This document shows, in pieces, positions 40,756 to 56,868 of a stretch of DNA of 64,000 nucleotides; the first letter of the stretch is position 1; every line of letters starts with the position of its first letter. The position numbers and the translations under genes were made by a program. The stretch is from Mytilus edulis. Taxonomy: Eukaryota. The stretch lies in NCBI RefSeq assembly GCF_963676685.1, contig NC_092350.1:20274001-20338000 (forward strand), written 5' to 3'. The notes under the pieces are model-generated. The model had not been told where the DNA came from. It ran no database searches and was given only the letters and a program-made list of their open reading frames with translations.

Positions 40756-42533
40756 AACTAGAGGCTCTAAAGAGCCTGTGTCGCTCAACTTGGTCTATGT
40801 GAATATTAAAGGAAGCAGATGGATTCATGATAAAATTGTGTTTTGGTGATGGTGATGTGTTTGTACATCTTACTTTACTGAACATTCTTGCTGCTTAAAA
40901 TTATCTCTATCTATAATGAACTTGGCCCATTAGTTTCAGTGGAAAATGTTAGTAAAAATTTACAAATTTTATGAAAATTGTTAAAAATTGACTATAAAGA
41001 ACAATAACTCCTAAGGGGGTCAATTGACCATTTCAGTCATGTTGACTTATTTGTAAATCTTACTTTGCTGAACATTATTGTTGTTTACAGTTTATCTCTA
41101 TCAATAATAATATTCAAGATAATGACCAAAAACAGCAAAATTTCCTTAAAACTAACAATTCAGGGTCAGCAACCAAACAACGGGTTATCCGATTCATCTA
41201 AAAATTTCAGAGCAGATAAATGTTGACCTGATAAACAATTTTACTCCATGTCAGATTTGCTCTAAATGCTTTGGGTTTTGAGTTGTAAGCCAAAAACTGC
41301 ATTTTATCCCATGTTCTATTTTTAGCCATGGCGGCCATCTTGGTTTGATGGCCGGGTCACCGGACACATTTTTCAAACTACTAACCCAAAAGATGATTGT
41401 GGCCAAGTTTGGATTAATTTGGCCAAGTAGTTTCAGAGGAGAAGATTTTTGTAAAAGATAACTAAGATTTACGAAAAATGGTTAAAAATTGACTATAAAG
41501 GGCAATAACTCCTAAGGGGTCAACTGACCATTTCAGTCATGTTGACTTATTTGTAAATCTTACTTTGCTGAACATTATTGCTGTTTATAGTTTATCTCTA
41601 TCTATAATAATATTCAAGGTAATAACCAAAAAGAGCAAAATTTCCTTAAAATTACTAATTCAGAGCCAGCAACCCAACAACGGGTTATCCGATTCATCTG
41701 AAAATTTCAGGGCAGATAGATCTTGAACTGATAAACAATTTTATCCCATGTCAGATTTGCTCTGAATGCTTTGGGTTTTGAGTTATAAGCCAAAAACTGC
41801 ATTTTACCCCATGTTCTATTTTTAGCCATGGCGGCCATCTTGGTTTGATGGCCAGGTCACCGGACACATTTTTCAAACTACTAACCCAAAAGATGATTGT
41901 GGCCAAGTTTGGATTAATTTGGACCAGTAGTTTCAGAGGAGAAGATTTTTGTAAAAGATTACTAAGATTTACGAAAAATGGTTAAAAATTGACTATAAAG
42001 GGCAATAACTCCTAAAGGGGTCAACTGACCATTTCAGTCATGTTGACTTATTTGTAAATCTTACTTTGCTGAACATTATTGCTGTTTACTGTTTATCTCT
42101 ATCTATAATAATATTCAAGATAATAACCAAAAACAGCAAAATTTCCTTAAAATTACTAATTCAGGGGCAGCAACCCAACAACGGGTTATCCGATTCATCT
42201 GAAAATTTCAGGGCAGATAGATCTTCACCTGTTTAACAATTCTACCCCATGTCAGATTTGCTCTTAATGCTTTGGTTTTTGAGTTATAAGCCAAAAACTG
42301 CATTTTACCCCTATGTTCTATTTTTAGCCATGGCGGCCATCTTGGATGGTTGGCCGTGTCACCGGACACATTTTTTAAACTAGATACCCCAATGATGATT
42401 GTGGCCAAGTTTGGTTTAATTTGGCCCAGTAGTTTCAGAGGAGAAGATTTTTGTAAAAGTTAACGACGACGCCGGACGCCGGACGCCAAGTGATGAGAAA
42501 AGCTCACTTGGCCTTTTAGGCCAGGTGAGCTAA
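40756..42533 (+). mobile_element. Helentron/DINE-like non-autonomous element with ~500-bp internal tandem repeats (3 copies)
   Basis: Starts aactagaggctctaaagagcctgtgtcgctca; unit marker ttaaaaattgactataaag at 40981, 41482 and 41982; gacgccg microsatellite; terminal hairpin agctcacttggcc-tttta-ggccaggtgagct (42501-42531); inserted in an A-run of an older related element (about 40460-43580). Confidence 0.8.
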
Positions 42534-47726: not shown

Positions 47727-48938
47727 TAGAGTGCCGCCTGTGGGGTGCTCATTTTCGCCACATCTTTCCATGTTTTCTACAGTTTATGTTCAGGTCTAAA
47801 TGTTTTTGAAGTATACTGATATTTCTATATGAAGATAACTTCAAATGCAAAATATACTTAAGGTGGTATGGGAGTCTAAAATAAAAATGATAGAATTTGT
47901 TCATACTTTGCCAAAACGTAGTATCTATTGATAAATGTTCAAAAATAGAATAAAAACGATAGGTCACCGCGCATTTTCTCAAGCCACAGGACGTGACAAA
48001 ATGACACATTTTGTATGGATTATACAGGAAAAGACACCATTTTGTGATTAGAAACTAAACAAAATGATAGAATTGTTAAATACTTAAGGAAAAGATGGCT
48101 TTCAGACAATGTTTTGAGAATATCAAAAGAAAAGATATGGTCACCGTAGGTTTTTTCCGGTTAAAATACAAAATAGGAAAATTTCATGTAGAATACTTCA
48201 GAAAATGCACTGTTTTAGAGTTACCTCCCCTTTAAATGCCAATTTAATTTTTTTTTAAAAACAACCAAAAATAATCAACATTTGCAAAAATATTAATATT
48301 TATAAGTTATAATCTTATAAATTGGTTCTTTTAAATGAAAATTTACATTAAATATCTGCATTCCTGCATCAAATTTTGCTAGCTTGATAGAAAATATGGA
48401 CCTTTGATTCTCTGTTTTTTACAATCCAAGATGGAGGAAGACACCAATACCACCTTAAGCTTGAAAACCGGTTTGTTTTAAGAAAATCATCTGAAAAGTT
48501 ATATTAAAGGGTGTTTGAAATTTCCGGATGTTTTGTCAATGGGGGACACATATTCGCCGTTTTTACACATCTATTTAAAACCAAATAACCGCAGCTTTTA
48601 ACAATTTTTATCAAATCAATTGTATTATAGATGAATAGCAGACATTTCAAAGGTATAAAGAATTCAAAATTAGGGCATTCAGTCAAATATTTACTTAGAA
48701 ATACTTCTTTGAAATCGTGATTTTTATTCAGGAAATTGTCCGAAAATCGTTGTCCGTTTTTCTGTCATTTTCGGTAGGAGCCACAATTTTGTCTCAGTTT
48801 AAAAAAATATTATATTTGTTATAAAAATATAATTTACGGGTACATTTCTTCCATTTCAGCCATCCTTTGAAGTTTTTACACCTCAAAACCCTTAAACGGC
48901 GAAATTGTGTCCCCGGCGAAAATGAGCACCCCACTCTA
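47727..48938. mobile_element. Non-autonomous TIR element
   Basis: tagagtg...tggggtgctcattttcgcc at the left, ggcgaaaatgagcaccccactcta at the right. Confidence 0.7.
47862..48454. mobile_element. TTAA-flanked MITE (Kolobok-like)
   Basis: TTAA|ggtggtatgggagtct ... agacaccaataccacc|TTAA; GG..CC termini. Confidence 0.78.
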
Positions 48939-49259
48939 TACCATGTATACAGTAAAAAAAGAATATGAACTCGTGATACACACAGAAACCTTAACAAAAG
49001 AAATGAGCAGTGCCTTTTCCTATCATAAAAAAGTGCCCTGCCCTCCACCCCTTTTGATTTCTAGCTGGAGCACTGTATATATATTGATGTTGTATGGTTG
49101 TATTCATTTAGATTTTTCCCACGTAAGGTGAGTTGCCACTGTCATGATTGTTGGCAGGAGTATAATTAGGGATTGAAGTATGAGCATAAAAGATTTATTT
49201 AAAGTCAGTTATGATACTTACTTAATGATACTTAATGATGTTTTCCAGTACAGGATCCT

Positions 49260-52200
49260 TCACGGTTCCTCTTCACCAGACTCATATAATTGAATATTAT
49301 CTCCATTATTTCTGATGCTGCTTCCGGTTAATTCAGCTCGATAATCAGAATAATAGATTTCTTCGTACTCCCAGTATCTATCTAGCCTATTTTTGAATGA
49401 GTTTATAGATGGCGCTTTAGTTACTTTATCTGGTAACTTGTTCCATAATTTGGCTATTCTTACAGAAAAACTGTTTTTCCTCAGACTTGTTTTGAATCGT
49501 TGGTGGATGATTTTATTACTGTTTACTCTTGTGCTATGTCTATTTTCAGTGCTTGAAATTAATTTAAGGAATGAACTTGTTTCTGGATCGTAATTACCAT
49601 TTAGTATCTTATATGTCTCAATCATGTCCCCTCGGACCCTTCTATATGACAATGTTGGCAGCTTGAGTTTTTTCAGTCTTTCCGGGTAGCTCAATTTATT
49701 GAAACCTGGTATCTGTCGTGTTGCCCTTTTTTGTACATTTTCGATTTTGTCGATGGATTTCTTTTTAAAAGGTGACCATACAGAGCTAGCATAGTCTAAG
49801 TGTGTTCGCACTAATGTTTTGTATAGAGGTATGAAGATTTTTTCGTTTAAGTTTTTAAATGTCCTTCTAATTGCGGCAAAAGTTGAATTAGCTTTATTCA
49901 CTTTTTCGCATATGTGTCTTTCAAAGGTTAGATCTTCATCAATTACTACTCCAATATCTTTCTCTTCTTGACATTTACTTATATCATGACCTAATAGTTT
50001 GTAACTTGTCTTTTCTTCCCTTACCCCTCTACTTATATTTATGTGTTTGCATTTTTCTGGATGGAACTTTAACAGCCATGTATCACTCCATTTCTCGAGA
50101 TTTTTTAGATCATCTTGCAATATAATTTGATCTGTTTTGCTTTCAATAATTCTGAAGATTTTTGTGTCATCCGCGAATAAGTAGGCATCTGATGTCACGC
50201 AATCTGGCAAATCATTTATGTATAGAACAAATAACAGGGGACCTAATACTGAGCCTTGTGGAATTCCTGAGGTTACATCTTTCCACTCTGGTGTTTCCCC
50301 ATTAACTGAAACTCGTTGTTTTCTATACGATAGAAAATCTGTTATCCACTCTAGGAATGGATTAGTTATCCCAAAATTTTCGATTTTCTTAACGAGTCGT
50401 CTATGGGGTACCGTATCAAAGGCTTTCATGAAGTCTGTATATATGCAGTCAATCTCATAACCATTGTCTATAGCTTCTGTCCATTTATCTATTACCTCTA
50501 ATAGTTGTAGTGATGTCGATCTCCCAGAGATAAATCCGTATTGTTTGTTTGAAAATAGTTTATTTTCTTTCATGTAATTAATTATATGTTCTCTTATTAT
50601 TTTCTCCATTATTTTACAGACGACTGATGTGAGACTTACTGGTCTATAATTTTTAGCTTGTGATTTATTCCCTTTTTTGAATATTGCACTCACTAGGGCG
50701 CTTTTCCAATCCTTTGGAACTACTTTTTGTGTTAAAGATTGGCTAAAAATGATGCCAAGTGGTTCAGCTATACCTTCTTTGACTTCAAACAGCAGTCTTG
50801 GGTGTAAATTATCAGGGCCGGGTGATTTATCCGTTTTTATTTTTTGTAGGTGTTTCAAAACCAATTCAGTGCCAATATTTAATTCCTCTATTTTTTTGTC
50901 TAATGGAATGTGCTTAGGCTCTGGAATATTGCCTTGTGGTTCATTAGTGAATACGCTTGTAAAATATTCTGATAGTATCTCGGCCTTTTGTTTATTGTCA
51001 TCTGTTTTTTCGGATTTTACATCTTCTGTATCTACATGAAGGTCCCCTATACCTTCCCTGGTCTTTGATTTAGATTTTATGTAGCTCCATATAGCCTTTG
51101 GGTTTCTTTTGGCATTTTCAGATAATCCTTTTTCGAATAATTTCTTTTGTTTATTGACTGATGTTTTGGCCTGGTTTCTGACTTTATTGTATTCAGCTCT
51201 TGTTTCAGGATCTTGTTTAGTTATAATTTTTTTGGATAGAATATTTTTCCTTCTAATTAACTCCCTCGTCTTTTTATCTATGGGGAATACATTTCTCTTT
51301 TTTCCTATTTGTGTCATAGTTTTTGTTGGTACAAATCTGCTCTCTAATTCTTTTAAAATGGTTAAAAAATAATTCCAATTTTTATCAATGGAATTTTCAG
51401 CATTAAGCTTATTATGCCAGTCTATTTTATTCAGCTCTTGAATAAATTCTTTGTAATTTCCATGGTTGTACAGATTAGCTATTTTCGGTGCTCTTTTTAT
51501 ATTTACATAACAGTTAAAATCAAAGGATAGGACGCAGTGGTCACTTTTTCCAAGCGGGCTCATATATTCTAGGTTTGAAATCATCTCTTCTTCATTTGTG
51601 ATTAGTAAGTCAAGTGTATGGGGTGTGTCAGCTCCTCTCCATCTTGTTGGTTTTGTTGTGTGTTGGTACAGAAAATTATCTTGTAGTGCTTCCAGAAATT
51701 TATTTTCAGTGCTGTTTGGTCTATCCCCCTTTGTGTTCCATGTTTCCCAGTTTATTTCAGGATAATTAAAATCTCCCATGATGAGTATGTGTGAGTACCC
51801 CATATCTGTTGCCTCTGACATTAGGTCTACTAGCTTATCATTGTATTCCTTGGAACTGTTGGATGGGGTTCTATATATCAGACCCACAAGGAGTTTGTCA
51901 TTTTGATTAAGTTTTACTTTTATAAATAAATTTTCCTGAAACTCTGTCTTCATTGTAATTTCTGTAGCTTCTAGATTGGAGTCTACATACATTAAAAGGC
52001 CTCGTCCTTCATCTGACTTTATGTTTTTCTCAAACATTTTGTAATTTCCTACCTCTGGTATTGAATATTCCGCTGTTGATGGTTTATATCTATTAGCTTT
52101 CGGTTTTACTTCTGTTATCCCAATGATATTTGGTTTGTTGTCTCTTGTACGAACGATCAATTCTGACATTTTGTTGAATAGCTGATCTGCATTTGTATAA

Positions 52201-52334
52201 AAACAGTTCAATTTTGGTAGAACTGTAAAGTTATTTACATTGCCGTTAAAAACCTTTCCCTTCTTTTGTACATTTATAAGTACATTTTTTGTGTCTCTTT
52301 TCACCTTTTTATTTTTACTACTTTCCTCGCCCAT
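49260..52334 (-). CDS. LINE ORF2: APE endonuclease plus reverse transcriptase (CR1 clade), 1024 aa
   Basis: APE motifs CFYTNA, GITE, IYRTP, MGDFNYP, LDL and SDH; RT motifs KSPGPD, NYRPVSLTS, DFMKAFDTV, GIPQGSVLGP and LFADDTK; CR1-type C-terminus (ENVQKRAT, RRVRGDMI, WNKLP, FKNRLD). No stops. Confidence 0.96.
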   Translation of the reverse strand: MGEESSKNKKVKRDTKNVLINVQKKGKVFNGNVNNFTVLPKLNCFYTNADQLFNKMSELIVRTRDNKPNIIGITEVKPKANRYKPSTAEYSIPEVGNYKMFEKNIKSDEGRGLLMYVDSNLEATEITMKTEFQENLFIKVKLNQNDKLLVGLIYRTPSNSSKEYNDKLVDLMSEATDMGYSHILIMGDFNYPEINWETWNTKGDRPNSTENKFLEALQDNFLYQHTTKPTRWRGADTPHTLDLLITNEEEMISNLEYMSPLGKSDHCVLSFDFNCYVNIKRAPKIANLYNHGNYKEFIQELNKIDWHNKLNAENSIDKNWNYFLTILKELESRFVPTKTMTQIGKKRNVFPIDKKTRELIRRKNILSKKIITKQDPETRAEYNKVRNQAKTSVNKQKKLFEKGLSENAKRNPKAIWSYIKSKSKTREGIGDLHVDTEDVKSEKTDDNKQKAEILSEYFTSVFTNEPQGNIPEPKHIPLDKKIEELNIGTELVLKHLQKIKTDKSPGPDNLHPRLLFEVKEGIAEPLGIIFSQSLTQKVVPKDWKSALVSAIFKKGNKSQAKNYRPVSLTSVVCKIMEKIIREHIINYMKENKLFSNKQYGFISGRSTSLQLLEVIDKWTEAIDNGYEIDCIYTDFMKAFDTVPHRRLVKKIENFGITNPFLEWITDFLSYRKQRVSVNGETPEWKDVTSGIPQGSVLGPLLFVLYINDLPDCVTSDAYLFADDTKIFRIIESKTDQIILQDDLKNLEKWSDTWLLKFHPEKCKHINISRGVREEKTSYKLLGHDISKCQEEKDIGVVIDEDLTFERHICEKVNKANSTFAAIRRTFKNLNEKIFIPLYKTLVRTHLDYASSVWSPFKKKSIDKIENVQKRATRQIPGFNKLSYPERLKKLKLPTLSYRRVRGDMIETYKILNGNYDPETSSFLKLISSTENRHSTRVNSNKIIHQRFKTSLRKNSFSVRIAKLWNKLPDKVTKAPSINSFKNRLDRYWEYEEIYYSDYRAELTGSSIRNNGDNIQLYESGEEEP

Positions 52335-53278
52335 GGCGGTCCTCGTACTTTGAACAGGAAGTCCCCCGAGTTGTTTTCTTGAAGTTTTTTTGCCTCAGCC
52401 CACAGTCTCTTTTCTTCTTCTCTCTCACTTTTAGTAAGGTCATTGCTTACATTTACTTTTTGGTATTTGGGATATGATCTAATATAATGCATGTTTCTAA
52501 ATAGGGTTAGTTTTGAGTCTATGCTCTTCAAATGGACTAATAGAGGTCTGTTTGTTTTTTCTTTATCATATTTCCCTAGTCTTTGTGTTTTTCTGATGTT
52601 TTCAATATCCAATGTTATCTTGGCATCTTTAAAGAGTTGGACTATATTTTCTACATCATGTTCTATTCTTTCTTGTTTATTTTCCGACTCATTTTCTGTT
52701 ATCCCAAATATGATCAGATTATTTTCCCTTGTTTTTCTCTCATTTATTTCCTCTAGTACTGTGGTTACTGTTCCTTGATTTGGTAGCACTCCACCTTCAA
52801 TATCCTCGGATACAACATTAGCTACTGCCCCTCCATTTAATGCTTCTTCTTTAGCTATTTCTCTTACTCTTTCCTCGTCACATTTGTGTTTTATAATCTC
52901 CTGGCTAACTATATCTCTTACTTCTTCTTTATCACATTTCTTTTCTATGGCGATTTCTATGTCATTTATTCTTTGCTCGTAGTTGTCCATGATCTCTCGG
53001 CATCTCTCTTCGATTTTCAGATCAGTAACTATGTGTTCTTCAACTACTTGTCTACATGGGGCGCAGAACCACATTGTGTCTGAGTTACTTAATATTTCAT
53101 ATTCAGTTTTTGATTTATTTAAACACTTTATGCAGAAATGCTCTTTACATCTTTGACATTCAAGGAGTTTAGCGTCTTCATTTTTATATATCTTTTGGCA
53201 TATTTTGCATTCCCATGGGTCTTCCTTTTTTTGATCGCTTGTTGCATTTGAGGTAGATTTATTCCTTCTTGTTGCCAT
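52301..53278 (-). CDS. LINE ORF1: PHD-type zinc finger, coiled coil and RRM-like domain, 325 aa
   Basis: CKIC...CQRCKEHFCIKC...WFCAPC (Cys at the usual His position), charged helical region, RENNLIIFGITE, RLGK...RPLLV and NDLT..ER motifs typical of CR1/L2 ORF1. Confidence 0.92.
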   Translation of the reverse strand: MATRRNKSTSNATSDQKKEDPWECKICQKIYKNEDAKLLECQRCKEHFCIKCLNKSKTEYEILSNSDTMWFCAPCRQVVEEHIVTDLKIEERCREIMDNYEQRINDIEIAIEKKCDKEEVRDIVSQEIIKHKCDEERVREIAKEEALNGGAVANVVSEDIEGGVLPNQGTVTTVLEEINERKTRENNLIIFGITENESENKQERIEHDVENIVQLFKDAKITLDIENIRKTQRLGKYDKEKTNRPLLVHLKSIDSKLTLFRNMHYIRSYPKYQKVNVSNDLTKSEREEEKRLWAEAKKLQENNSGDFLFKVRGPPWARKVVKIKR

Positions 53279-53312
53279 AGCTACTACTATAGTTGATTTA
53301 TTTATTTTTATA

Positions 53313-53974
53313 TAGGGCTTCCCTAAATGAAAATATATTAATTTATTTATTTTATTTCATATAATAGAGCTTCTCTATTATTAAAATAAGAAATGAGTTA
53401 ATATTTTTATCTAGTATTTTAAAATTTAGGGCTTCCCTAAAAATAAAATTTCTCTAGATAATATTATTTATCTTCCTGATATTAGATAGAGCTTCTCTAT
53501 CTATAATTATTTTTTTCTAAGCTTGTTGTCCCTTTATTCTGCTCTTTCCTATGTCCTATATTAGGGCTTCCCTAATAGAATTGATCGTTAAGTTGTAATC
53601 TCCTTTCTATTTATCCGGACGAATAGGGCTTCCCTATTCATCTAAATAATTATGAAGTATGTTAATGTTAGATAGAGCTTCTCTATCTATTCTAGGCCCC
53701 CTATTATTTGTTCTATACTTAGTTATGCTAGCTATCTCTGTATGGTCTTTTATGTTGTTAATTCCTAGAAAAACAGGGCTTCCCTACTTTTCTAATATTT
53801 TATTCAATTTTTTAAATAACTTTTTAATTTATGATCTAATAGGGCTTCCCTATTCTTTTTATTATTTGAGTGATGTTGTTGATTTTCCTCTTTGCTTTAT
53901 AATTAAGGCTTCCTTAATTATATTACGCAGAATAATTCGGATCTAGTATGTTAAACAAGGCTTCCTTATTTAAC
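53313..53974 (-). repeat. Array of 11 stem-loops with invariant G-AAG-C loop and unique spacers; two more at 54877-54899 and 54965-54979
   Basis: Loop centres at 53319, 53371, 53433, 53493, 53568, 53630, 53679, 53780, 53846, 53910 and 53962; stems of 5-13 bp vary in sequence but stay paired. Confidence 0.92.
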
Positions 53975-54015
53975 TGTTTTTCTTGTTTTTATTGTCTATT
54001 TTGCTGGCTATTTAA

Positions 54016-54810
54016 TTAACATCCTTGCTCTGACAGTTCAAGTGCCAAATCTATGAATTTCAGCATCCACAATTCATTTACAGCTCTTATGGGATGTACT
54101 CCGTCCGATGTTAGGTTGAAATTCTTTCTATATTTAACTTTAGTGTCTCTTTTTGTCTTGTTTGAAAGGATAAAATCTTGAGAAATTCTTGGTGTAGAAT
54201 AAAGGCGATTAATCAATTTTAGGTGATCGTTGAAGTAGTCAATCTGTTCGCTTAGTTCTTTGTCTATGTTTGTTGCCAATTGGACTTTTCTGTGACCTTT
54301 GGTGGCTTTATTTACCAGGAGTGACGGATATGTCTTTTTTTTACTATTCACAATTAAGTTAATTGAATCTTTAGGTTTATTGGCCCTTGTGATCGAATAG
54401 TATGGACACTCTATAAAAAGCACTGTGGCAGATGGTTTTGTTGTTATGATTTGTTGTTTGAGATCCCTATATTGTGTTAAAGTTTCTTCTATATTTTGAT
54501 ACGGTGATTTTCTAAACTGGATGGTTTTGTTTATCTTCTGTGTAATTTCACATGTACCTAGCCAGATCAGTATTATTGGGTGATCCAAATCTTTCACCGT
54601 GTCTATGAGTGATTTTATGTGTTTTTTGTTGTCGATCGATCCTCCTCTCTTATACAACACTTTAAATTTTTGTCCAGTTGATTCTGGGATATATTCTTTT
54701 AGGCCCACCCCTTTGCTGTCCGTGAACAAGATAGTGTCTCTTTCCAGGTGTGCTCCCCTAACCCTTTGGTATATCTTTTTCCTCTCTTTAATTATCTTCC
54801 TCACAGACAT
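54016..54810 (-). CDS. Stand-alone SGNH/GDSL esterase-like ORF (ORF0) of the LINE, 264 aa
   Basis: Block I-like ILFTDSKG, block II-like KRGG, block III-like IWLGTCEI and block V SDGVHP, so Ser-Asp-His triad candidates are present. Confidence 0.8.
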   Translation of the reverse strand: MSVRKIIKERKKIYQRVRGAHLERDTILFTDSKGVGLKEYIPESTGQKFKVLYKRGGSIDNKKHIKSLIDTVKDLDHPIILIWLGTCEITQKINKTIQFRKSPYQNIEETLTQYRDLKQQIITTKPSATVLFIECPYYSITRANKPKDSINLIVNSKKKTYPSLLVNKATKGHRKVQLATNIDKELSEQIDYFNDHLKLINRLYSTPRISQDFILSNKTKRDTKVKYRKNFNLTSDGVHPIRAVNELWMLKFIDLALELSEQGC

Positions 54811-56264
54811 ATATATAATGATTGTTACTACGACTGTATATTACTTTAATAGACTATAGCACAAGCGGTGTAAATGAAAAATAGGGCTTCCCTATTTTTT
54901 GTACACAAACAGTATTATTCTAGGCGAACGCAAAAAACGAAGTATATAAATACAAAATATAATGATAGGGCTTCCCTATAATTATATAATTTAAATATCG
55001 GAGCAGAAAAGCGCAAAATACAGAATATAAATGTCAATTAACAATATGAATGTCCGGTTTTTCGGCAACGTGGTTTGACCACCAAATTCTGACGAAAGAT
55101 GATATAATCTACATTTTGGTGTTGGGATGATCAAAATTTTGTGTATATGCTATATAAAGGTTTTGATGATTCGTAAATGATGTTTTTGTTTATGGATGTA
55201 CACTGATTACCAACAATAACCACGGATTTAAATCTGATTTCTCTTAGCTTTTTCTTTCACAACTTCTAACCGGAACCGGAAGCTGTTATACATATATGTA
55301 TAACAATACAACATAATTAAGCTCTGTAGAGCTTTTATCCGACATATAAGCTGTCGTATAAAAGCTGAAGTTCAAATTATGGCATAGTAGCCCACATCTT
55401 ATATTTTTTACACAATTTATATAGTTCTATAAAAGAAAAGCAGAAGTTTTAGAAGCCCACTCCAAATTTTAGGGGCAAATGGGCTAATTTCAAACCTGGA
55501 TATTTAACCATTTGTTAACTGGATTTGATCAAAAGTTGCATATAAAGTGGGGTGAGTTGGTAAGGTAGTTCCCACTTGGATTTTCAAGAGTTTAGGGGGG
55601 GGGGCTATGATGAAAATGTTATCCTGCATTGTCGTTACTCTTTTTTTTGGGGGGGGAGGGGGGGTCCAGCTGGCTTTTAGATTTTTACTCAAAACTCGTC
55701 CTCTATATTTCAATTTCATCCAACCCCCAACCATCAAATGATAGATGAATGAGACTGAGCTCCCTAAAAAAGAGTGGAGCAATTTAAAAAAACAGCCGCG
55801 TTGTTAAAAAAAAGTGGGGCGTTTGGCGTTTTACCAGTGGGGCGAGCTTTATACTTGCTTCCGTTTTTGTCAATTTTTGACTGATTTTCGGGGTTTACAT
55901 GCATGACGTGGATAAAGTGACTATATATTTTATGAAAGTATAAAACTAGTCTAACATCGTCCTAAAAATGTGCATGATTATATTTACCTTTCATTGGACA
56001 AGTACAAAAAAGTTATCCGGATACATTTTTGTTGCGATGACTTTTTTAAATGTATGTTTCGTTCTCCGGTTTCTTCCAGTTAATCGGTAATGTAACCCAT
56101 TTCAGTATATCTGTTTACAATAGCTTTTTGAACCATCTGTTTGAAAAACAAAAGTTCTTTGTATCAACTGTCTGACCATTCAAACATCAGCAGACGAGCG
56201 TCCTTTCGCGTCATACTATACAAAACGACCACGGTGAAAAGATTTCCGGTTTTTCCGTATTAAG

Positions 56265-56430
56265 CTCGGGATTTCGGGATTTACCCCATCGGGATCCGGG
56301 AATTCTTTTTTTCAAATTTCGGGATCCGGGATTTAACTTTATTTAAATTCGGGACCTCGGGATTTCGTGTTTTTAAGCCCGGGATTTCGGGATCAGGACC
56401 CCTCCTACCCCCCCCCCCCCCCCCCTCATA
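56265..56430. repeat. cgggat-rich repeat end ending in poly-C (MITE fragment)
   Basis: About ten copies of cggga(t) within 140 bp. Confidence 0.55.
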
Positions 56431-56868
56431 TCATTTATGTGAGAGTTAACTTAGTCTGGAATCGAGAATGGGGGATTTAATAAGGACAAAAACAAATTTA
56501 GTTAAAAAGCAAAAATATAGAATAAAGGATCATTATTCTCAGAGCATATATAGTGTCTCTGGAAGATTCATGAGAATAAAGAAAAACTAAATAAAGGATA
56601 TTCAATCAATTATCTATTATTTATAACTCATTCACATTTTGTTCCATTCATAATTAAATAACTGTGCTGAGGGGGGCATGATGGTGAAGTTTGGAAAATT
56701 GACAAACGAGAATTACTCAGGCTAAATCATAGAATAATTAAATGTAACTGTTAGACAGTTAGAGTGTAATAAATAAAATATCATGTACATATATTTTACA
56801 AAATGAGGTCACAGAAAACACAGATTTTTGTTATTACTAATAAGAGTCTGCAATTTGAGTATCACTGT

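Follow-up and report, generated by a model that had tools for sequence, protein, structure and literature searches.

A conserved RNA hairpin array in the leaders of a mussel LINE

Introduction

The RNA recognition elements known in LINE retrotransposons are single stem-loops at the 3' end. In "stringent" LINEs of the broad CR1/L2 group (UnaL2, ZfL2), the element's own ORF2p recognizes a specific small hairpin at the extreme 3' tail of its RNA and uses it to start reverse transcription (PMC4176376). Non-coding sequence with repetitive or regulatory character also lies upstream of or between LINE ORFs, as in the ~200-bp tandem promoter repeats (monomers) of the mouse L1 5' UTR and in the L1 inter-ORF region, and translation of the downstream ORF is unconventional in these elements. 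Arrays of small hairpins have been described in other kinds of RNA. Single-stranded RNA viruses carry multiple packaging-signal stem-loops, among them the dispersed signals of the MS2 type, the alphavirus nsP1 stem-loops with GGG loops and the dispersed signals of coronaviruses (bioRxiv 10.64898/2026.06.18.733228). The Xist A-repeat and roX-box arrays of long non-coding RNAs repeat a conserved, hairpin-forming core about 8 times, separated by low-complexity spacers of variable sequence and length, and act as multivalent modules for protein recruitment (for MLE and hairpins, see PMC4710571). Finally, small basic proteins or peptides read the operator hairpins of phages. Binding of the MS2 coat protein couples translational control to assembly, whereas an arginine-rich helix is the reader of boxB in the lambda N peptide.

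How the proteins of a LINE pick out their own RNA (cis preference) is an old open question, as is the role of the esterase carried by CR1/L2-type elements. Here we describe a LINE of the mussel Mytilus edulis whose leaders carry 13 copies of one small RNA hairpin next to a predicted esterase ORF. The element lies in a window of 64,000 nucleotides (RefSeq assembly GCF_963676685.1, contig NC_092350.1, positions 20,274,001 to 20,338,000), and all coordinates below without a contig prefix refer to this window. An initial annotation, made from sequence alone, had proposed that the region 53313-54979 holds regularly spaced, covarying G-AAG-C hairpins with unrelated spacers. We tested whether the array is real, whether relatives retain it and which functions the evidence favors.

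Results

A three-ORF LINE with accessory domains

Nucleotide alignments (blastn) to other genomic copies delimited a 6.07-kb element on the minus strand (49213-55283), in which homology spans a 5' UTR, three open ORFs separated in part by a long leader, and a short 3' UTR. The 5' UTR (54811-55283, 473 nt) precedes ORF0 (54016-54810), which encodes a basic protein of 264 aa (pI 9.8) with DSKG and DGVHP motifs and a conserved, K/R-rich N-terminal helix. Pfam and PDB sequence searches with ORF0 returned no match, and its identity came only from the predicted fold: the AlphaFold model (pLDDT 86.5) had GDSL esterases and PAF-AH as its top Foldseek hits, consistent with an SGNH/GDSL esterase. A 737-nt inter-ORF leader (53279-54015) separates ORF0 from ORF1 (52301-53278). 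ORF1 encodes 325 aa with a PHD finger (Pfam), a coiled coil and an RRM and CTD like those of L1 ORF1p; the top Foldseek hits of its AlphaFold model (pLDDT 83.6) were the human LINE-1 ORF1p trimer (2ykp/2yko). ORF2 (49260-52334, 1024 aa) overlaps ORF1 by 34 nt in another frame and carries an AP endonuclease followed by a reverse transcriptase (Pfam Exo_endo_phos_2, 8e-16, and RVT_1, 4e-35). The 47-nt 3' UTR (49213-49259) ends in short direct repeats (UAUCAUUAAG-like), with no poly(A), as in CR1-like elements, and no copy of the hairpin.

These features match those of CR1/L2-group (Jockey superfamily) LINEs with accessory PHD and esterase domains, including an ORF1 of type IIC (PHD plus coiled coil, RRM and CTD; PMC4120745), except that the predicted esterase is here a separate ORF rather than part of ORF1. 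The name CR1 used in the initial annotation is therefore right as an architecture, a statement that does not extend to phylogenetic placement of the reverse transcriptase in the CR1 rather than the L2 lineage.

Thirteen hairpins with one loop on the sense strand

The observation made in the initial annotation held in every detail. All 13 inverted repeats are present and all have the same orientation, with a CTT loop on the plus strand and AAG on the minus, element-sense strand. When G-U pairs are allowed, the stems are 5-14 bp long. Two hairpins lie in the 5' UTR: hairpin 1 (54965-54979, auaggg-AAG-cccuau, 6 bp) and hairpin 2 (54877-54899, 10 bp), which score 32.4 and 35.9 bits, respectively, with the covariance model described below (R1). 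The other eleven fill the inter-ORF leader. In the order of the element's sense strand they are hairpin 3 (53950-53974, 11 bp, UAAGG/CCUUG with one U-G pair), hairpin 4 (53898-53922, 11 bp, UAAGG/CCUUA), hairpin 5 (53838-53854, 7 bp, UAGGG/CCCUA), hairpin 6 (53765-53795, 14 bp including G-U pairs), hairpin 7 (53669-53689, 9 bp, UAGAG/CUCUA), hairpin 8 (53618-53642, 11 bp and the most stable at -15.4 kcal/mol), hairpin 9 (53559-53577, 8 bp), hairpin 10 (53483-53503, 9 bp, UAGAG/CUCUA), hairpin 11 (53425-53441, 7 bp, with stem position 5 variable among copies), hairpin 12 (53361-53381, 9 bp, UAGAG/CUCUA) and hairpin 13 (53313-53325, a 5-bp core 35 nt upstream of the ORF1 AUG). The stem variants and the different outer arms noted previously are real, and the apparent mismatches at 53766-53794 and 53950-53974 are G-U pairs on the minus strand only.

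The centre-to-centre spacings in the leader are exactly those first reported (52, 62, 60, 75, 62, 49, 101, 66, 64 and 52 nt) and are more even in this copy than random placement (CV 0.22, P = 0.001), although regularity was not significant in two related lineages (C and E, below). The pattern RGCTTCY occurs 33 times in the window against 13.5 +/- 3.9 in shuffles, and thirteen of those hits are clustered here, all on one strand. In the RNAfold minimum-free-energy structure of the leader all 11 hairpins form (z = -8.7). Palindromes fold on either strand, however, and the antisense fold was also better than its shuffles (z = -5.9).

We also asked whether the array is a decayed tandem repeat or minisatellite. 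Tandem Repeats Finder reported no ~60-nt repeat, and pairwise local alignments of the spacers scored no higher than those of shuffled spacers (mean 15.9 against 15.4; best pair 25 against a shuffled maximum of 26). Hence, the array is not a simple tandem repeat, as the initial annotation had argued. Its description as a repeat-spacer architecture is only a visual analogy; the stems vary, the spacers range from about 20 to 90 nt and faint traces of a duplicated two-hairpin unit remain.

Covariation and strand asymmetry

Covariation was examined in 33 non-redundant hairpins from four lineages. In this set 87% of cells were paired against 70.5% in shuffles, and 64 cells carried a change on both sides against 24.9 expected. 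No shuffle of 500 reached either value, and sliding the partner column dropped pairing to 24-53%. The loop is an invariant AAG closed by G-C, and the upper stem has a fixed orientation (5'-Y-A-R-R-G / C-Y-Y-U-R-3', with purines always on the 5' arm), so that the top five pairs never flip, whereas pairs 6-10 flip freely between AU, UA, GC and CG. The lower stem is of free sequence that only has to pair, and this asymmetry between upper and lower stem is recognition-like. To assign the strand, we took without selection all 42 GAAGC sites in the arrays of four families plus the 5' UTR of the window copy. The first eight stem positions held 18 G-U pairs and 2 A-C mismatches (P = 4e-4), which points to structure in the element's own sense RNA.

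Restriction to one clade and conservation across lineages

The covariance model R1 scored the 13 sites at 29-36 bits and nothing else in the window above 14 bits. All 63 genomic copies of the exact 13-mer lie in this LINE clade. Of the 66 genome-wide model hits, all but one lie beside esterase homologues or in fragments of this clade; the lone model hit is at C8:36843915. A search of Rfam 15 over 48000-56500 on both strands gave no match at E <= 1, and literature searches found no description of such an array in a LINE.

Every copy of the window's own family (family A) that spans the whole spacer without an internal deletion carries the array, so that it belongs to the template RNA rather than to a separate insertion. 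Four further lineages (B, C, D and E), one of them on a metagenome contig, keep 7-13 hairpins (about 10 in E) at the same position between the esterase ORF and ORF1. Their esterase is 45-61% identical, ORF1 49-60% and ORF2 63-76%, yet the leaders align between lineages only at the hairpins. This comparison leaves out an extra lineage at C6:11524275-11525886 and many esterase families of ~30% identity. In contig L056, a 35%-identical esterase homologue is followed by two hairpins and then by an ORF that is not an ORF1 homologue. The second of these hairpins has the same GGG-AAG-CCC top and the first has an ATTG loop, and so the motif travels with the esterase module. Within family A, hairpin columns vary in 2.6% of positions against 8.3% for spacers (P = 0.003), but the same constraint was not significant in lineages B and C.

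An A-rich, AUG-depleted leader

The inter-ORF leader is 46% A and contains 2 ATG against 12 CAT in 737 nt. The leader of lineage C has 2-3 ATG against 8-9 expected (P < 0.01), and the 5' UTR of the window copy has one ATG against 7.9 +/- 2.0 in dinucleotide shuffles. The decayed metagenome copy L055, in contrast, shows no AUG depletion. The depletion shows that the leader is probably scanned by ribosomes, which favors a link to translation over an IRES that bypasses scanning.

Discussion

A putative multivalent protein-binding platform

We consider it most likely, with a probability of roughly 0.5, that the array, which diverged relatives keep at the same place, is a selected, undescribed multivalent platform on the element's own RNA for a protein that would recognize both its sequence and its shape. 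In this view, several copies of a basic element-encoded protein would dock side by side at about 50-65-nt intervals, the candidates being the ORF0 protein, through its K/R-rich N-terminal helix, and the trimeric L1-like ORF1p. Docking would nucleate the retrotransposition RNP in cis and, because the copies sit in the two leaders that ribosomes must cross, it would also tie RNP assembly to translation of ORF1 and ORF2, as a phage coat-protein operator does. What our analyses establish is the presence of the hairpins, their covariation and strand, their restriction to this clade, their conserved position across diverged lineages and the AUG depletion; that a protein binds them, which protein this is and what follows from binding are inferences from sequence and predicted structure alone.

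Several observations temper this reading. The motif is invariant while ORF0p and ORF1p have diverged to 45-50% identity (35% in L056), which would suit a highly conserved host factor as well as, or better than, an element protein. The esterase domain of zebrafish ZfL2-1 did not bind oligo(A) RNA stably (PMC3905857). Furthermore, L1-type ORF1p is known as a protein that binds nucleic acid without sequence specificity. The mixed results for constraint within families and for spacing regularity also weigh against it.

The interpretation offered in the initial annotation is therefore supported only in part. It correctly placed the structures in the element's sense RNA and correctly excluded a simple tandem duplication. 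The functions that it listed as examples of a protein-binding or processing array (ORF1p/ORF0p loading, RNP packaging, internal initiation on a tricistronic RNA, or cleavage into small RNAs) remain hypotheses on present evidence.

A bolder version of the platform model, which we regard as possible but unlikely, is that the hairpin is the cognate operator of the ORF0 protein. Its N-terminal helix would read the G-AAG-C top, the array would load many copies of the protein on the element's RNA, and the lipid-binding esterase fold would take the RNP to membranes. This would be the first sequence-specific RNA-recognition system in the leader of a LINE and the first mechanistic role for the retrotransposon esterase, whose function has been open since 2003.

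Alternative readings

The best surviving alternative, though a tentative one, is a translation element that lets ribosomes reach ORF1 on a presumed tricistronic RNA, either by reinitiation after ORF0 or by recruiting ribosomes or initiation factors inside the leader. The hairpins would then bind a host translation factor or the ribosome. The array fills the whole gap between the ORF0 stop and the ORF1 AUG, further copies precede ORF0 and none lies elsewhere. The leader is A-rich and AUG-poor, the hairpins are weak enough to be scanned through (-7 to -15 kcal/mol) and the invariance of the motif suits a conserved host partner. On the other hand, AUG depletion points to scanning but not to a need for the hairpins, a true IRES would not need an AUG-free leader, and L055 lacks the depletion. 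This reading is compatible with the platform model rather than exclusive of it.

Less likely is a platform for a host factor acting after transcription in the nuclear export, stability or localization of an intronless retroelement RNA, comparable to the CTE, RTE or MTE export elements of retroviruses and murine retroelements. Retroelements commonly carry multi-stem-loop export elements (PMC4588558), the motif is conserved across very diverged element proteins and many copies would add avidity. However, the near-complete restriction of the motif to this LINE clade, with no host transcript seen to use it, argues against it, and the known export elements are single complex folds, not arrays of one small hairpin.

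We find it improbable that the array has no RNA function, being either the remnant of a ~60-nt tandem duplication or a set of DNA palindromes that propagate and persist by DNA-level processes such as snap-back synthesis, gene conversion or palindromic transcription-factor sites of an internal promoter. The even spacing and the traces of a duplicated two-hairpin unit point to an origin by duplication, hairpins are no more conserved than spacers within lineages B and C, and one copy has a deletion that starts and ends in hairpins. Yet the spacers have randomized while the hairpin core stayed identical across lineages whose proteins are only 45-76% identical, and the array is kept at the same position in every lineage examined. 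The 18:2 excess of G-U over A-C is not expected for double-stranded DNA sites, and covariation of the lower stem out to 8-10 bp is not explained by the half-sites of a dimeric transcription factor. kappaB- or ETS-like sites are likewise rejected because the UAGAG variant lacks the core and the strand asymmetry argues against DNA sites. Other readings were also discarded: a CRISPR-like array, because the repeats vary and this is a eukaryotic LINE; an intron fusing ORF0 to ORF1, because copies made from the RNA keep the array and the deletions differ between copies; and kissing loops, because AAG is not self-complementary. Least likely are processing sites that separate the cistrons or release small RNAs, for although the layout superficially resembles processed arrays and nothing in the data excludes an endonuclease that recognizes the loop, stems of 5-14 bp fall short of the about 20 bp or more of miRNA- or siRNA-type precursors and are too short for Dicer- or Drosha-type substrates, and cleavage in the leader would destroy the full-length template when copies with the complete array are the ones that retrotransposed.

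Significance and comparison with described systems

The hairpin is small, sharply defined, restricted to its clade and evolutionarily conserved, and its position next to the esterase gene brings both cis preference and the role of the esterase within reach of direct tests. It also adds a candidate new RNA family to a phylum whose mobile elements are poorly studied. If a host factor were the reader, the motif would mark a host-retroelement interface in bivalves.

As in the packaging signals of single-stranded RNA viruses, several short stem-loops on the sense RNA share a loop and top-of-stem motif while the stems and the intervening sequence vary, and in those viruses their number gives avidity for a multimeric protein. 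Here, however, the host is a non-LTR retrotransposon with no capsid, the copies are clustered in leaders rather than dispersed through coding sequence, and any binder is inferred. The Xist A-repeat and roX-box arrays share the repeated core and variable spacers, but they are host regulatory RNAs with other motifs and partners and no relation in sequence. The phage operators resemble this hairpin in that recognition is through the loop and the orientation of the upper stem, as is proposed here, and ORF0p has a K/R-rich helix as a possible counterpart to that of lambda N; loop and stem sequences differ, and the resemblance is one of analogy. Among LINE leaders, L1 monomers are DNA promoter repeats that align along their whole length and L1 inter-ORF spacers are tens of nucleotides long, and neither is an array of one covarying hairpin. 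The 3'-tail stem-loop of UnaL2 and ZfL2 provides the precedent for a LINE-encoded protein that recognizes a specific small stem-loop in its own RNA, and in the same broad CR1/L2 group, but that element is a single hairpin at the extreme 3' end, whereas the hairpin described here occurs in 7-13 copies in the 5' UTR and inter-ORF leader.

Hairpins in the leader sequences of the element

We read the stretch on both strands and identified on the minus strand, which is the sense strand of the surrounding element, 13 hairpins of the form stem-G-AAG-C-stem with stems of 5-14 bp when G-U pairs are allowed. Eleven of the hairpins lie between the stop of a 264-aa ORF (54016-54810) and the start of a 325-aa ORF (52301-53278), and the other two lie upstream of the 264-aa ORF. 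The centre spacings are exactly those listed in the initial annotation, and its observation of a hairpin array is confirmed. The pattern RGCTTCY occurs 33 times in the window, compared to 13.5 +/- 3.9 in shuffles, and 13 of these hits are clustered in the array on one strand. Tandem Repeats Finder did not detect a repeat of ~60 nt, and the ten internal spacers are no more alike than shuffled spacers. The spacing of the hairpins in this copy is, however, more even than random placement (CV 0.22, P = 0.001). Elsewhere in the window (41139-42154, minus strand), three near-identical small hairpins (aauuuu-AAG-gaaauu) lie exactly 500 nt apart, suggesting a tandem repeat of ~500 bp unrelated to the LINE.

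Organization of the host element

Comparisons with other genomic copies placed the element at 49213-55283 on the minus strand (6.07 kb). The element starts with a 5' UTR of 473 nt, whose extreme 5' end (55278-55284, minus strand) reads AGCUUCC. This sequence is complementary to the GGAAGCU found at the UAGAG-type hairpins, and its core (GCUUCC) matches GGAAGC at the others, although a single 7-mer match could well be due to chance. The first coding region, ORF0 (54016-54810, minus strand), had no sequence match in Pfam or PDB, but its AlphaFold model (pLDDT 86.5) matches GDSL/SGNH esterases and PAF acetylhydrolase, and the sequence carries the DSKG and DGVHP motifs. ORF1 (52301-53278, minus strand) encodes a PHD finger followed by a predicted coiled coil and RRM-CTD module whose best structural matches are the human LINE-1 ORF1p trimer. 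ORF2, which overlaps ORF1 by 34 nt, encodes an AP endonuclease and a reverse transcriptase. The element terminates in a 3' UTR of 47 nt that ends in short direct repeats and has no poly(A). The genome is that of a Mytilus, and the closest database proteins are from M. edulis and M. galloprovincialis. The architecture is that of the CR1/L2 group (PMC4120745), an assignment that holds at the level of the group rather than of the exact lineage. Esterase-type ORF1s were found in that study only in vertebrate subgroups, which makes the presence of a separate, upstream ORF for the predicted SGNH esterase in a mussel element notable in itself.

Evidence for structure in the sense RNA

We aligned without gaps 33 non-redundant hairpins from four lineages to test for covariation. 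In a 10-bp helix, 87% of the cells pair, compared to 70.5% in column shuffles, and 64 cells carry changes on both sides, compared to 24.9 expected. None of the 500 shuffles reached either value, and sliding the 3' partner by 1-3 columns reduced pairing to 24-53%. The inner five pairs were part of the rule used to select the hairpins; the outer pairs were not, yet they still pair in 24-30 of the 33 hairpins using AU, UA, GC and CG. The top five pairs never flip orientation (5' arm Y-A-R-R-G, 3' arm C-Y-Y-U-R) and the AAG loop is invariant, whereas the lower pairs flip freely. This is the pattern of a site read by a protein at its top and needing only a helix below. To assign the structure to a strand, we examined without any pairing filter all 42 GAAGC sites in the arrays of four families plus the 5' UTR of the window copy. 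The first eight stem positions of these sites hold 18 G-U and 2 A-C (P = 4e-4), which points to the sense RNA. Further, all 11 hairpins form in the RNAfold minimum-free-energy structure of the 737-nt leader that separates ORF0 and ORF1 (z = -8.7), although the antisense strand also gave z = -5.9. Single hairpins contribute -7 to -15 kcal/mol.

Specificity and genomic distribution

A covariance model of the 27-nt hairpin motif, built from the alignment, scored the 13 sites at 29-36 bits and nothing else in the 64-kb window above 14 bits. Rfam had no match. All 63 genomic copies of the exact 13-mer UAGGGAAGCCCUA fall in elements of this clade. As a control, we searched for the 13-mer read backwards (ATCCCGAAGGGAT), which occurs 62 times against a rough, composition-based expectation of about 10; some other repeat family probably carries it. 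A genome-wide scan with the model, in which only the best 150 candidates were scored and whose counts are therefore lower bounds, returned 66 significant hits. All but one of them lie beside esterase homologues or in fragments of this clade already recovered, and they include a further lineage on contig C6. The exception, on contig C8 (36843915-36843941, plus strand; 34.2 bits), is the only strong hit that is not next to a detected esterase homologue or a known fragment of the clade.

Conservation of the array

The family represented in the window comprises 7 copies at 90-97% identity, and other lineages keep the same layout of esterase ORF, hairpin array and ORF1. Lineage B (loci L045 and L046) has 7-8 hairpins and proteins that are 56% (esterase), ~60% (ORF1) and 76% (ORF2) identical. 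Lineage C (loci L047, L048, L052 and L025) has 11-13 hairpins and identities of 45-50%, 49% and 63%, respectively. Lineage D (locus L049) lacks ORF1, has only partial esterase and ORF2 sequences and carries 3 hairpins. Lineage E, on a metagenome contig (L055), has about 10 hairpins, an esterase 61% identical and an ORF1 58% identical; ORF2 is not covered by the contig. Between lineages the leaders align only at the hairpins, in a many-to-many fashion, except for a weak trace of a two-hairpin unit. Thus, the spacers have randomized while the 13-nt core stayed identical. Two decayed copies of a sister family (~80% identical) on contig C11 (L050, 24812000-24821999; L051, 31343000-31352999) have the first ~115 nt and the next ~180 nt of the leader separated by about 3.9 kb, presumably by a nested insertion inside the array.

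Every copy of the window's family that spans the whole spacer without an internal deletion retains the array, so it is part of the template RNA and not an intron or a later insertion. One copy (L008; contig C6, 2694697-2697906) lacks the sequence corresponding to 53488-53904, and both deletion end points fall inside hairpins (53483-53503 and 53898-53922). Other copies carry different internal deletions (53709-54185 in L007 and 51552-53406 in L006). The hairpins may act as recombination or template-switch points. Among five copies of the window's family, hairpin columns vary less than spacer columns (2.6% against 8.3%; P = 0.003). The same test was not significant in lineage C and showed nothing in lineage B. 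The case for selection therefore rests mainly on the comparison between lineages.

Clues to function

The sense strand of the leader is 46% A and strikingly poor in AUG, with 2 ATG against 12 CAT and 4-9 of the other permutations outside the hairpin cores (TGA, with 3, is also low). Lineage C has 2-3 ATG compared to 8-9 expected from dinucleotide shuffles (P < 0.01), and the 5' UTR has 1 compared to 7.9, but the decayed contig L055 shows no depletion. This avoidance of AUG suggests that scanning ribosomal subunits probably cross the array to reach ORF1, arriving either after termination at ORF0 or on a shorter transcript. The hairpins occur only in the two leaders, and none lies in the 3' UTR. 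Among the proteins that could read them, ORF0p is basic (pI 9.8) and has a K/R-rich N-terminal helix that is conserved in close relatives, whereas ORF1p has the predicted L1 ORF1p fold. A link to the esterase is suggested by contig L056 (JYMV01011404.1), where a 35%-identical esterase homologue with one in-frame stop is followed (positions 740-900) by two hairpins with a bulged A and covarying lower stems. The first has an ATTG loop, and the second has the same GGG-AAG-CCC top. Next comes an ORF of 433 aa that is not homologous to ORF1 (hhalign probability 0.3%). On this single case, the motif travels with the esterase module.

Interpretation

We interpret the array as a multivalent protein-binding platform on the element's sense RNA, placed in leaders that are probably scanned. 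The most likely reader, in our view, is a basic protein encoded by the element, either ORF0p or ORF1p, whose binding would nucleate the RNP in cis and feed back on translation. That a protein binds the hairpins, which protein it is and what follows from binding are all inferences from sequence and predicted structure. The interpretation in the initial annotation is partly supported by these results: they support structure in the element's own sense RNA that is not a simple tandem repeat, whereas the multivalent protein-binding or processing function that it proposed is inferred. A host factor acting in translation, export or stability is a serious rival because the motif does not change while the element's proteins diverge. 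A functionless decayed repeat, DNA-level palindromes and small-RNA precursors all fit poorly with the strand asymmetry, the lower-stem covariation, the short stems and the retention of the array in retrotransposed copies.

Comparison with known systems

Full-text literature searches did not identify any description of such an array in a LINE, and the papers examined on CR1-group ORF1 and esterase diversity do not mention hairpins or stem-loops. None of the closest analogues in function is related in sequence. They include the multi-hairpin packaging signals of RNA viruses and core-plus-spacer arrays such as the Xist A-repeat. Also analogous is the 3'-tail stem-loop that stringent LINEs use for ORF2p recognition (PMC4176376), which is a single copy at the other end of the RNA.
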